The notes beneath the pieces are model-generated. The model was not told where the DNA came from, ran no database searches, and was given only the letters and a program-made list of their open reading frames with translations. From Octopus bimaculoides (Eukaryota), in assembly GCF_001194135.2 (NCBI RefSeq), contig NC_068998.1, positions 50,168,671-50,232,670 of the forward strand: 64,000 bases of DNA, written 5' to 3'. Both the position numbers and the translations under genes were made by a program. Positions 51,201-58,677 of the stretch are shown here, piece by piece; position 1 is the stretch's first letter, and every line of letters begins with the position of its first letter.

Positions 51201-54200
51201 TATTTATTTATGTTGAATACCATATTACCCCATATGTATGTATATATATATATATATATATACATATAAATACATGAAAAGGTATATATATATATATATA
51301 TATATATATATATATATATATATATACATACATATACTTATACACACACACATAAAATGCATATAGATATGCATACATACATCAATAAATATGTGTGTGT
51401 GTGAGTGTCTGTGTGTGTGTGTGTGTGTGTGTGTGTGTGTGTGTGAAGGCGCGTGGCTTAGTGGTTAATGCATTCGGCTCAGGAACGTATGGTGGAGAGT
51501 TCAATTCCCTGCGACGCGTTGTGACCTTGGCCAAAACACATTGCTCCAGCTCACTCACCTGGAAAAATGAGTGGTCCCTGTATTTCAAAGTCCCGGCCTT
51601 GTCACACCTTGTGACTGAATCAATTTCAGACCCCGTGTTGAGACTAAAACTATTCCAGCGCTGAAGACGCGTGTTACCAGTTCAATAACACAAAAAAGTT
51701 TGTTTGATTCATTTAAACATTTATTCTTTTCTACTCAAGGCACGAGGGCCGATATGTTTGTGGAGGGGGCCAGCCAGTTAGATCGACCCCATTACGCAGC
51801 TGCTAGTTACATTACCGACCCCGAAATACTGAATGGCAAAGTCGACCTCCGCGTAATCTAAACTTTGAACGTAAAGACAGATGCAATTAAACATTTATTG
51901 TGCGTAATATGATGTCGACACTATTGTCGTTCGCAACTGTAAACTCATCTCCGACAACCCTACGGTCTATATTTTTAATAATGCAAACATTTGTTTGTTC
52001 GTTTCTTTTTTTTCCTGCGATTAAATTTGAGGACGATTTCTCTGTTTTTCAGTGATTATGAAGGTTTTCTTCGTTGCGTTGAGACACGTGAGGATCGCTG
52101 TTATATAAAGTATAGGGTTCGACACATCTGTGCAGTAAGTTATTTACTGTTCTATTTTTGTTCGGTGACGAGTATAAGAAAGAGCTAATCAATACATTAT
52201 ATGTCACATTTCCATCATTTGTTGATTGTTCTTTAAATTCAGAATGACCTTTGAAACGAGAAATGCCACGCATCGGAGTTTATGAACAATCTGAAACCTT
52301 TTTCCAGTGTTGCAGATATAATTATTTTCCAGTAAGCATCAAAGTTTGAGAGAAGAATTGGCCAAACTGATGATGTGTATGTTATATATTTCAAACCCAT
52401 TATTATTCAAATGAATGAAAGAGTTAGGAAACTATAATTAATTAACCAATAGTAATCATACTTGTGACACACTCCATATACTTTATAAAAAAATCTCCAA
52501 TATTTTAACATCTGCGCCCTTTCAATTTGAAATCTATTTAAAATAAGTTGACATCAACCGCCCACATTCTCAGGAAATGTCTCTCTACCTAACATAAATC
52601 TTAGGTCTCTGGTTGAGACTCGGTTAGAAGATGAATTGAAATTCAAGCCAATCGAATAATGATGATGATGATGATGATGATTATGATAATAATAATAATA
52701 ATAATAATAATAATAATAATAATAATAATAATAATAATAATAATAATAATAATAATAATTATTATTATTATTATTATTATTATTATTATTATTATTATTA
52801 TTTTATGTTTGACTTTTGTTTTGCATTTGTACAAGTTGGATCCAAGTNNNNNNNNNNNNNNNNNNNNNNNNNNNNNNNNNNNNNNNNNNNNNNNNNNNNN
52901 NNNNNNNNNNNNNNNNNNNNNNNNNNNNNNNNNNNNNNNNNNNNNNNNNNNNNNNNNNNNNNNNNNNNNNNNNNNNNNNNNNNNNNNNNNNNNNNNNNNN
53001 NNNNNNNNNNNNNNNNNNNNNNNNNNNNNNNNNNNNNNNNNNNNNNNNNNNNNNNNNNNNNNNNNNNNNNNNNNNNNNNNNNNNNNNNNNNNNNNNNNNN
53101 NNNNNNNNNNNNNNNNNNNNNNNNNNNNNNNNNNNNNNNNNNNNNNNNNNNNNNNNNNNNNNNNNNNNNNNNNNNNNNNNNNNNNNNNNNNNNNNNNNNN
53201 NNNNNNNNNNNNNNNNNNNNNNNNNNNNNNNNNNNNNNNNNNNNNNNNNNNNNNNNNNNNNNNNNNNNNNNNNNNNNNNNNNNNNNNNNNNNNNNNNNNN
53301 NNNNNNNNNNNNNNNNNNNNNATTATTATTATTATTATTATTATTATTATTATTATTATTATTATTATTATTATTATTATTATTATTATAATAATAATAT
53401 GTATTGTTATTTGTATTTATATTTAATCTGCTTGTATGTTACAATCACTTGATGAAACACACCCAGCGTCCTGGGGCGAGTGAAGGATGAGAGATTTTAA
53501 GCTTGACTGAGAGCTTAGGGAGAGAATGTAACAGGGTCTGTAGCGAAACACCTTCATGTAATACAACACTGACATTTAATCTGATTGCCCATTTCTAAGT
53601 ATGTCTGCAGTACTTGTCAGCAAAATCTTTTGGCTTTCTCTCAGACATGATTTTCCTAGACGTTTTATCTAGACGTTTCTGGCATAAATTTCTTATCATA
53701 CCTAGGACACCTACAACAGTAGTAACAGTTCTCGATTTAAGAGGCCACATCTTTTTCTTTTGTATTTCAATTTTCATATTCTTATAATTACTTAATTTGT
53801 CCAGTTCCAGTATTGAGGTCGAATTCATCTCTCCTTAAATTTCGGAACTTTGCCACAATTTGGAACTACTATTCTTAAGGGGGGGCAGAATAGTTAGCAC
53901 GTCGGGCAAAATAATTTGTGTCATTTCCTACATTTTATGAACTGACTCCAAATACAGCCTTGGTCCGCTCTACCGTTTATCCTTTCATGGTTGATAAAAT
54001 AGTGACAGAGGTACATCGAGGCTGATGCAATCATGTTGTCCCTCCCCACAATATTCCAGTCTTCGTACCTATAACAGAGAGGATTATTATTGTCATTCTT
54101 ATTAATTTTAACATTGACGATGCTTCTTGTTTTATACCATTGACTTTATATTAATACATTAATACATATATTACAAATTACATTGTGACTTCATGAGACA

Positions 54201-57200: not shown

Positions 57201-58677
57201 CGAGTCATCGTACTTGCACACTTCAATTGCATTATCATTAATCAGAAAGTGTATATTACTAGCAATGTTATAACATTTTTTTTAATGAAATCCAGGTGAA
57301 ACATGAACTTTTTATTTTTGAAAATATATTAAATAGAATTTCTGTTTTTGTATTTATAATTTAACGATATTATCCCTTTCCCTTTTTCAAAGACAACCAG
57401 TTCGAGTTCCAGGTCCATAATTAAGGTACGTGATGTCATCATGTCTTCTAAATCATCGTTTGAAGTGCTTGTATAAACGATATTATTTTAATTTACACCA
57501 GTTTAAAGAGATATTGTAACGTGCCTTATTGGCTATTTTATATTGTAAACAAATTCTCAGTGTTATATTTTTTCAACATATTTTTTCTATATTTCATAAA
57601 TGACCTAATCGCATTCCTACAAAACTATGACAATACGAATATACTAATTATTACTTCTAGCAACATGGCGCTGAGCTGACAGAGTCCTTTGCACGCTGGA
57701 CGAAATGCTTAAGGCTATTTAGCTCGTTGGAACGTTCTTAGTTGACACTCCTCTGAAGGCGATTTCGCACTTCATTCTTTGAGGGTTGTGAAATTAAGTA
57801 GCAATCAAATGCTGGTTTCAACGTGAAAGAAATTATATATCCATCAATGCGGTTTTGAGACCTCATTTCATTGTTCAACATTTTCGTATATACACTATGT
57901 TTTCTTGTATTATGTGAGTCCCTCATTTCTCAATGATTTCAAAACCCCGTGTCCGATTTTCTGAAACTTTTATCAGGTTATGTAGGATTATGCATCCCAT
58001 GTCTTTTAAGCGGAAATGCAGAAAAAAACAACATTTATAGTATGTTTCTTTTTATAATATAAGTTATGTAAGTTAAGGTATTCTGTAAGTTAAATTATTA
58101 TGTAAGTTATATAAGTTAAGGTATTATATAACATGCGACACTACTTTCCCCTAAATGTCAAATTTCAAGCCTTGTGCCTATATGCGGAAGGGTTGATACT
58201 TGTAGCAATTATATTAACCGATGATAAATTTATTATTCTATCAACCTATCCTGCGGGTGACACAATATGAATGTGCAATGTGGTTTACGTACATTAACTC
58301 GGAGATATTTCACAAGCTTTCAAAAATATATGCAACACAACGTGTGTCGTTTTTATTCAATTATTACTTTATGAAATATACACATTTGCCTTTAAAAAGC
58401 GCCCAGTGATTAAATTCAAGTTCATAATTTATTTCGCACGAAAAGCGTGTCGCAACAACTATAATCAGTACTCTGTCAATCTCTAATTATTTTAGCATCA
58501 GACAAGGTTTCAGAGCCCATCCCTTTTTACGCTAATACATTTCATATATCTATTTTCCGTAAGCATTTATTAAGATGTTCTATATTTTATTTTCTGTTCG
58601 CTTTACAGATGACGTTCAGAGGGGTAATCGTTACTGCATTTGTGGGTACATTATTAATGCATAACAAAGTAAATTGA
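48201..58677 (+). CDS. Gene G: ~130-aa 6-Cys GPI-like protein with three linker mini-exons
   Basis: Exons 48201-48240, 49371-49470, 52053-52134, 54370-54405, 55909-55941, 57393-57425, 58609-58677. MRYLILLLFAIRFA-ESRIIPTGECIALDTQRCKIAYDRFKIKKTMCN-DYEGFLRCVETREDRCYIKYRVRHICA-RKMDHDREVKRK-LRDRHEYKHES-TTSSSSRSIIK-MTFRGVIVTAFVGTLLMHNKVN*. AATAAA at 58811. Whether all three mini-exons are included together is unknown. Confidence 0.85.
51447..51665 (+). mobile_element. tRNA-derived SINE in gene G intron 2
   Basis: GGCGCGTGGCTTAGTGGTTAA (A box) ... GAGTTCAATTCC (B box), followed by a non-tRNA body. Confidence 0.65.
53450..53830 (-). mobile_element. Non-LTR retrotransposon fragment, restriction-like endonuclease C-terminus
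   Basis: ORF 53595-53828: ELDKLSNYKNMKIEIQKKKMWPLKSRTVTTVVGVLGMI resembles the 'K..KY..L..E...MW....VPVVVGALG' motif. Confidence 0.6.
53877..57790 (+). repeat. Three tandem ~1.5-kb units, each SINE + intron + linker mini-exon + SINE fragment
   Basis: ATTAATCAGAAAGTGTATATT recurs at ~54235, ~55755 and ~57238. Mini-exons are spaced 1539 and 1484 bp. SINE-1 heads at ~53880, ~55380, ~56910 and ~54645, ~56180, ~57665. Confidence 0.85.

Follow-up and report, generated by a model that had tools for sequence, protein, structure and literature searches.

A tandem array of three micro-exons in intron 3 of LOC128249829, a member of an Octopus bimaculoides family of cysteine-rich proteins, and its probable two-step origin

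Introduction

Tandem exon duplication is well documented in animal genes (Kondrashov & Koonin 2001; Letunic, Copley & Bork 2002). Here we describe an array in Octopus bimaculoides, in intron 3 of LOC128249829 (gene G). The gene lies in a 64,000 nt stretch of contig NC_068998.1 (assembly GCF_001194135.2, positions 50,168,671 to 50,232,670 of the forward strand), which we call the window and to which coordinates refer unless stated otherwise. As in the described cases, a single gene carries tandem copies of an exon together with its flanking intron, and the copies are of near-equal length and the same phase and diverged later. Each copy is surrounded by homologous flanking intron, and this core can be aligned to the paralogues D (LOC128249946), E (LOC128249940), F and H (LOC128249830, which starts at 61328). 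The array differs from the described cases in that the copies are apparently included together rather than alternatively, in that the exons are only 33 % identical at the nucleotide level so that homology is visible only in the introns, and in that the copies are micro-exons of 33-36 nt encoding a linker rather than a domain.

Non-allelic homologous recombination between Alu or other short interspersed elements (SINEs) gives rise to intragenic exon duplications, for example in LDLR and in the partial tandem duplication of KMT2A. The array in G is likewise SINE-dense, has same-orientation elements around the duplicated exon and appears to have expanded by unequal crossing-over. Unlike those cases, its junctions carry no chimeric SINE, its period does not match its SINE spacing, the crossover in its middle unit (U2) lies in the unique core or exon, and a parallel duplication in the distant paralogue LOC128249942 took place without a detected SINE.

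Mutually exclusive exon clusters with docking-site and selector sequences, such as Dscam exon 6 and 14-3-3zeta, resemble the locus in that each of the tandem exon copies in G lies behind a conserved intronic element. No complementary docking sequence was found in G, however, the element is also present in paralogues with a single micro-exon, and the annotated mRNA has all the copies. With regard to the product, small cysteine-rich surface proteins anchored by glycosylphosphatidylinositol (GPI) are known from the Ly6/uPAR family and CD59. As read from its sequence, the G protein has a layout like theirs, with a putative signal peptide, a small disulfide-rich domain, a short linker of small residues and a C-terminal hydrophobic tail, but the G family is predicted to be helical rather than a three-finger beta fold.

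Intron 3 of G holds an old tandem array that probably arose by two-step duplication of a unit, and we think it probable that its micro-exons are included jointly and lengthen the stalk of a probably GPI-anchored protein. The array offers a compact, datable case of coding sequence growth through micro-exon duplication in a repeat-rich intron. The order of events can be read from sequence alone, as can a chimeric middle copy that preserves the trace of an unequal crossover, exons that outpace introns and a parallel case in a paralogue. The locus also draws attention to a taxonomically restricted, probably GPI-anchored octopus family that has neither a Pfam model nor a structural relative. General views are unchanged, since tandem exon duplication and introns rich in transposable elements are well known and the exons of G are already in RefSeq; the contribution is a modest one, a well-resolved example of tandem exon duplication in an uncharacterized octopus-only family.

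Results and Discussion

Structure of the gene and of the array

G occupies 10,477 nt of CM046618.1 (GCA_001194135.2), which equals the distance from 48201 to 58677 in the window, and all features below are on the plus strand except where stated. The spliced translation of the region matches XP_052830331.1 (uncharacterized protein LOC128249829, 130 aa) with 99 % identity and 100 % coverage. Joining the seven window exons gives this protein exactly, with all three micro-exons present in the order U1-U2-U3 rather than only one of them spliced in. Exon 1 (48201-48240) carries the start codon and a hydrophobic, signal-like peptide, MRYLILLLFAIRF, and ends in phase 1; splicing from this exon reproduces XP_052830331.1. 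Exon 2 (49371-49470) encodes the first three-cysteine module (C-x7-C-x13-C), as shown by splicing and by the family alignment, and exon 3 (52053-52134) the second, ending in phase 0 at GCA/gtaagt. The three micro-exons follow: U1 (54370-54405; 36 nt, RKMDHDREVKRK), U2 (55909-55941; 33 nt, LRDRHEYKHES) and U3 (57393-57425; 33 nt, TTSSSSRSIIK). Each is phase 0-0 and is bounded by an AG acceptor and a GTACGT donor. The counterpart of U1 is the first micro-exon of H, RKILIEQERRLK. In U2 the ancestral acceptor is gone (TTTTAT), replaced by an AG 6 nt further downstream, and U3 retains the serine run. The last exon (58609-58677) encodes the hydrophobic C-terminal tail MTFRGVIVTAFVGTLLMHNKVN, a probable GPI-attachment signal, and the stop codon. 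An original prediction made from the DNA alone had read the three peptides exactly, although the start it implied for U1 was about 1 nt off.

The micro-exons lie in three tandem units, with spacings between members of three-copy repeat families of 1506-1533 and 1484-1512 nt. As that prediction had it, the units are about 1.5 kb long and can be aligned; their identity is about 65-70 %, and blastn gives 68-70 % between them over 940-1240 nt. The prediction had placed the array at 53877-57790. The array is indeed there but is slightly larger (approximately 53801-58209): homology begins near 53801, and the last unit closes at the 3' target-site duplication of its downstream SINE (58198-58209). The possibility that the array is an assembly artefact was rejected because the units differ by about 30 %; there are also no runs of N within 53322-61916, and H has the same layout.

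The SINEs were mapped with an nhmmer profile made from the window's copies of one dispersed repeat of approximately 220 nt. Each micro-exon core has a full-length plus-strand copy of this SINE-like repeat on either side, so the bracketing by same-orientation elements that had been described is real. Unit U1 (53801-55320) consists, in order, of a partial SINE (W, 53801-53868), SINE-a, the exon core, SINE-b with an (ATT)18 tail, partial SINE-c and the unique stretch V. It is followed by units U2 (55321-56814) and U3 (56815-58209). SINE-a is found at 53872-54085 (U1; profile positions 5-220), 55384-55592 and 56896-57084. SINE-b is found at 54642-54912 (U1, with the tail; profile match 54642-54860), at 56174-56376 and, as a split third copy, at 57663-57814 plus 58146-58197. 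Partial SINE-c is present at the U1/U2 junction (54933-55006, profile approximately 116-169) and at the U2/U3 junction (56427-56508) and there is none after U3. V is also confined to junctions (55046-55276, with a second copy at 56595-56816) and recurs at the junction in H (L002 18253-18421). The 12 nt target-site duplication of SINE-b, ACTTGTAGCAAT, has its 3' copy at 58198-58209 and 5' copies at 54633-54645, 56166-56178 and 57654-57666. Past 58198-58209, right after U3, G is again collinear with the paralogues D, E and F.

The repeat is dispersed in the window in both orientations, with minus-strand copies at 1467, 10270, 25202, 51724 and 62845, and it behaves like a SINE: it has an (ATT)n tail, and the target-site duplication around SINE-b has an intact empty site in the paralogues. 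ARAGORN found no tRNA in the window, the best copies of the repeat had no tRNA, 5S or 7SL match in Rfam at E<=10, and an Rfam search of the array gave no meaningful match.

The left flank of the array is marked by a minus-strand ORF remnant (53408-53807) that is common to an intron of paralogue E and marks the ancestral edge. The two introns can be compared at 53598-53834 (-) in G and 34134-34409 (-) in E, which read LDKLSNYKNMKIEIQKKKMW and FDKLNKYKDLETDIQKMW respectively. We take the remnant to be LINE-like (from a long interspersed element), or reverse-transcriptase-like, from resemblance. Intron 3 also contains a 474 nt assembly gap (52848-53321), flanked by (ATA)n and (ATT)n microsatellites, shortly before the array begins. 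A fourth unit hidden in this gap is unlikely, the sequence flanking it being collinear with paralogue E. In U3, a 332 nt insertion specific to G (57815-58145), with a 17 nt tandem repeat at 58064-58109, interrupts SINE-b; the equivalent SINE of H is uninterrupted. No further copy of this insertion or of the V filler was found within the window, and the filler has no homology above shuffled controls to the outer flanks of the array, SINE tails excepted.

Origin and age of the units

H has two micro-exons, RKILIEQERRLK and ERLRNGSSSQNK, 1.93 kb apart, with the same unit anatomy and junction filler as G (SINE-a / core / SINE-b / SINE-c / V / W / SINE-a / core / SINE-b). In a neighbour-joining tree of the five units of G and H, G_U1 groups with H_u1 (99 % bootstrap) and G_U3 with H_u2 (76 %). 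Because the units pair between the genes in this way, the first duplication, from one unit to two with the junction filler, is placed before the G/H gene duplication, and the duplication is not specific to G. In this first step a segment of approximately 1.1 kb in the G/H ancestor, with an upstream SINE and a fresh downstream SINE, would have become two units separated by about 430 nt of extra sequence. The upstream insertion, SINE-a, is old, since F and D also have remnants of it (at 41584-41702 and 23670-23719, respectively) upstream of their micro-exons. The empty site of SINE-b, TTACTTGTAGCAATATTATTAACC, is intact in D, E and F, and by this comparison SINE-b is the younger of the two.

The middle unit of G has a mixed ancestry. 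There are 29 sites at which both type-1 units (G_U1 and H_u1) share one base and both type-3 units (G_U3 and H_u2) share another. At these sites, U2 has the type-3 base at 13 of 17 up to approximately 55919 and the type-1 base at 10 of 12 beyond (Fisher P = 0.0025; best-split permutation P = 0.014), so that its 5' side is U3/H_u2-like and its 3' side U1/H_u1-like, with the switch near 55919-55921. The Jukes-Cantor (JC) distances of the 5' half are 0.27-0.29 to type-3 units and 0.36-0.38 to type-1 units. This indicates that U2 is a chimera produced by recombination between two misaligned units, with a crossover in or next to the micro-exon and outside the SINEs. The second step would therefore be a homologous unequal crossing-over between misaligned units, after or around the G/H gene duplication. 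A breakpoint outside the SINEs had been named in advance as telling against an exchange between them; that is where the U2 switch lies, in the micro-exon core, and the breakpoint of the first duplication is unmappable.

Pairwise distances between units are JC 0.33-0.43. On a published octopus repeat clock, JC 0.2 corresponds to approximately 56 million years, and O. vulgaris and O. bimaculoides split 13-33 million years ago (PMC13282606). Unit divergence would then be roughly 50-60 million years per lineage, older than that split, and distances of JC 0.37-0.43 would place all three units before it. This is only a rough date, since the core intron does not evolve in a clock-like way, the single-copy introns of F and E evolving about half as fast as the G units. 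The neighbour-joining branches of the core intron are 0.09-0.10 for F (41715-42212) and E (34405-34797) and 0.18-0.19 for each G unit (54100-57668). The difference would reflect constraint on the single-copy introns or acceleration of the tandem copies.

The distant paralogue LOC128249942 has a micro-exon duplication of its own. Its micro-exons, GKKGYRIIDT and DTKSSSHKDN, are 30 nt each and 1.25 kb apart, and its units are 68.6 % identical to one another, with no SINE match and no nucleotide homology to the G units. This looks like a duplication independent of that in G. The two exons are at L003 58665-58694 and 59912-59941 and the gene lies at approximately 50.08-50.14 Mb of CM046618.1 on the opposite strand. 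The extra micro-exons add 23 residues to the G protein and 12 to that of H. A more ambitious reading is that the stalk has been lengthened repeatedly and independently (in the G/H ancestor, in G and in LOC128249942), positive selection tuning the distance between the cysteine-rich head and the membrane. On this reading, the copy next to the anchor retains the attachment site while the upstream copies outpace neutral sequence and become charged helical spacers. We regard it as a tentative extension that has perhaps one chance in a few of being right.

It had been proposed that unequal crossing-over between SINEs made the array, through misalignment of same-orientation elements and crossover within them. 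Several features are compatible with this. Every SINE piece in the array (53.8-57.9 kb) is on the plus strand, the filler begins and ends with truncated SINE pieces (SINE-c from profile position approximately 116, and the junction SINE from approximately 98), and the left edge of the array (approximately 53801) is a truncated SINE abutting the antisense ORF remnant. Additionally, the unique sequence just 3' of SINE-b, GATGATAAATTTATTA, resembles by inspection a core motif of the SINE, so a microhomology junction is conceivable. However, no junction consists of a single chimeric SINE. Each is made up instead of a full SINE-b, its target-site duplication with approximately 15-20 nt of downstream unique sequence, partial SINE-c, 230 nt of V, a partial SINE and a full SINE-a. 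All units have a full-length SINE-a and a full-length SINE-b, and the period of approximately 1.5 kb does not correspond to the distance from SINE-a to SINE-b (approximately 770 nt). Neither SINE-c nor V occurs before U1 or after U3, where a simple SINE crossover would leave them. The ancestry of U2 switches inside the micro-exon (approximately 55919-55921), and LOC128249942 achieved its duplication without a SINE match. We therefore consider SINE-by-SINE exchange unlikely, and the SINEs are not demonstrably the cause of the array. Because both ends of the filler are truncated SINE pieces, it is possible that the first duplication was a template switch or a microhomology event involving SINE sequence. 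Taken together, the comparisons point to an origin that is older, in two steps, unit by unit and in part common to H, and not to a SINE-by-SINE event specific to G.

The gene family and its predicted product

The window carries a tandem family with a shared layout: a signal-like exon, two three-cysteine exons, a micro-exon, and a last exon with a terminal hydrophobic tail. The family alignment shows a conserved hydrophobic N-terminus (MRYLILLLFAIRFA, by inspection), six invariant cysteines, a micro-exon-encoded motif of small residues (SS[SC] in most members), a K-x-K spacer and a TAFVGxLLMHN C-terminus. All eight family members have an SS[SC]/SSN-type motif, K-x-K and approximately 15-18 hydrophobic residues that end 0-5 residues before the stop codon. 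The serine run is present in the micro-exons of the single-copy paralogues (PASRSSSKQK, KQALKGSSCKHK and HPAEHESSSKDK) and likewise in the last micro-exon of H, ERLRNGSSSQNK. In G, as had been noted, only U3 has it and U1 and U2 do not, and in H and LOC128249942 it is also confined to the last micro-exon. This fits a division of labour in which the anchor-proximal copy retains the attachment site and the upstream copies become a charged spacer.

Among 1.84 billion representative proteins searched exhaustively with HMMER, family members occurred only in O. bimaculoides and always on this chromosome. Word-indexed and HMMER searches for orthologues in other cephalopods returned only O. bimaculoides proteins together with chance matches to EF-hand proteins and to one repetitive protein. 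Pfam gave only sub-threshold chance matches for the family, and Foldseek gave no fold match in the PDB at E<=1, the rows for RAMP1-3 having a probability of <=0.06. AlphaFold2 run on the family alignment predicts a helical core with a pLDDT (predicted local distance difference test) of 74-86 and a helix over residues 72-91 that runs from the last cysteine through the U1 peptide and into U2.

Because this layout fits established features of GPI-attachment signals, G is probably a GPI-anchored, octopus-restricted cysteine-rich protein. U3 would retain the ancestral role, providing a small-residue site just upstream of the hydrophobic tail that makes up the probable attachment signal. U1 and U2, which have diverged faster than their introns, would contribute a highly charged, predicted helical segment of 23 residues that lengthens the membrane-proximal stalk of a six-cysteine helical domain of approximately 60 residues. 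An extended stalk, one of the functions that had been proposed, is accordingly our best reading of the insert, the stalk itself being predicted. The stop codon of G (58660-58677) lies three codons past that of the paralogues (LLMHNKVN* compared with LLMHN* or LLMHT*), which adds polar residues behind the hydrophobic tail.

Inclusion and divergence of the micro-exons

The single annotated mRNA of G splices in the three phase 0-0 micro-exons together, and their inclusion in vivo is probably constitutive. The alternative, also raised in the original prediction, is that they are a cassette or mutually exclusive set giving isoforms with stalks of differing length. Their lengths are multiples of 3 and their phases 0-0, so any subset is frame-compatible, and tandem exon duplication is reportedly a classic source of alternative exons. 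A conserved 25 nt intronic block, TTAATCAGAAAGTGTATATTACTAG, also lies 113-130 nt upstream of each G micro-exon (54232-54256, 55754-55778 and 57238-57262). The block is also found in paralogues with a single micro-exon, however, and a search allowing up to 5 mismatches found no complement to it; its most stable duplex (-14.1 kcal/mol) does not differ from the shuffled mean (-14.2 kcal/mol). In a collection of approximately 15 billion proteins there was no skipping isoform of G (0 of 7) or of H (0 of 2). In RefSeq, G and H have a single isoform each; isoforms are recorded for other family members and differ only at the N-terminus. Isoforms without U3 would additionally forfeit the serine-run site. 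Alternative use of the three exons is therefore improbable, slightly more so than SINE-by-SINE exchange.

The intronic block is also seen at 23864-23888, 34417-34441, 41816-41840 and L002 16988-17012, approximately 113-140 nt upstream of the micro-exon. Of the eight micro-exons in D, E, F, G and H, seven have it with 0-2 substitutions, and in the second unit of H there is no match within 4 substitutions. The block is far better kept than the exon. That it may be a splicing enhancer for the micro-exon is a guess.

The exons have diverged more than their surroundings, and this opposite of conservation is the most telling signal as to their use. Identity across the U1-U3 exons is 33 % compared with 65-76 % in the flanks and a median of 65 % for the unit alignment. 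The micro-exon is the lowest ungapped window in that alignment (binomial P from 2.5e-3 to 1e-8), and 33 % is about the level of unrelated AT-rich sequence, so the exon copies have no recognizable similarity. The same trend is seen in G_U1/H_u1 (58 % in the exon and 73 % in the flanks), G_U3/H_u2 (61 and 74 %) and the LOC128249942 pair (53 and 75 %, the latter upstream). Because neutral decay cannot outpace the flanking SINEs, this excess points to positive selection or to repeated small rearrangements in an expressed linker.

Several observations weigh against joint inclusion of functional exons in a two-step array as we have set it out. A long branch leads to the 3' half of U2, which joins H_u1 in only 51 % of bootstraps, and because it is so weakly placed the chimera rests mainly on the 29 informative sites. 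Inclusion of the micro-exons comes from a Gnomon model, and no assembled transcript contig encoding the LOC128249829 protein was found. The exon differences between G_U1 and H_u1 are by inspection nearly all non-synonymous, only frame, splice sites and charge being kept, and this retention is a weak sign of function. That the frame is kept is not in itself significant, since the flanks seldom show frameshifting indels (0.14-0.64 expected per 36 nt per pair). Finally, the tail of G is atypical of a GPI signal in having five polar residues at its end.

An alternative is that U1 and U2 are neutral passengers, exonized or model-included duplicates with no selected function that are drifting to loss. 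Consistent with this, the U1 and U2 peptides are unrelated to the ancestral peptide, the predominance of non-synonymous differences is as described, an open frame without stops over 33-36 nt is not improbable by chance, and the acceptor AG has shifted in U2 and U3. Neutrality does not predict exons that are so much more diverged than the SINEs and introns beside them. It also does not predict the constancy of the donor, which is unchanged over 6-9 nt in every unit (GTACGTRAT is identical in 8 of 8 family units examined) against approximately 0.18 substitutions per site on each unit branch. Since before the G/H split, the first-type exon (G_U1 and H_u1) has remained 36 nt long with the same splice sites, and in both genes it still encodes a peptide of net positive charge that starts with RK and ends in K. 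The same pattern is seen in LOC128249942. We give the neutral explanation about one chance in ten, a little less than alternative splicing. Joint inclusion of the three exons remains our preferred reading, and the earlier argument for their use holds in that XP_052830331.1 contains all three and that H keeps the charged first-type exon with the same length and splice sites.

It is very improbable that the charged insert serves ectodomain shedding by bringing in convertase sites since, although the predicted dibasic RK and KRK sites are present in the peptide and R-K-L-R spans the U1/U2 exon junction (by inspection), the peptide lacks a canonical R-X-[KR]-R site, H has not conserved the motifs (RKILIEQERRLKERLR), AlphaFold2 makes the segment helical rather than an exposed loop, and dense R/K/E/D composition is typical of charged helical spacers.

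Other features of the window

The window is AT-rich (approximately 32 % GC) and contains 14 runs of N. A bacterial-style ORF reading was discarded, as there are no long ORFs and the genes consist of short exons. A tblastx self-comparison was also discarded, giving mostly noise because the introns of the paralogues align in all frames.

In paralogue F, ACG replaces the start ATG of G, E, D and H (exon 1, approximately 37690-37740), and F is missing from the RefSeq proteins that map to the window. For these two reasons F is probably a pseudogene. Its micro-exon core is the slowest-evolving copy despite the ACG start. Finally, between genes D and E there is a near-perfect tandem repeat with a period of 115 nt and 99-100 % identity (25880-26234).

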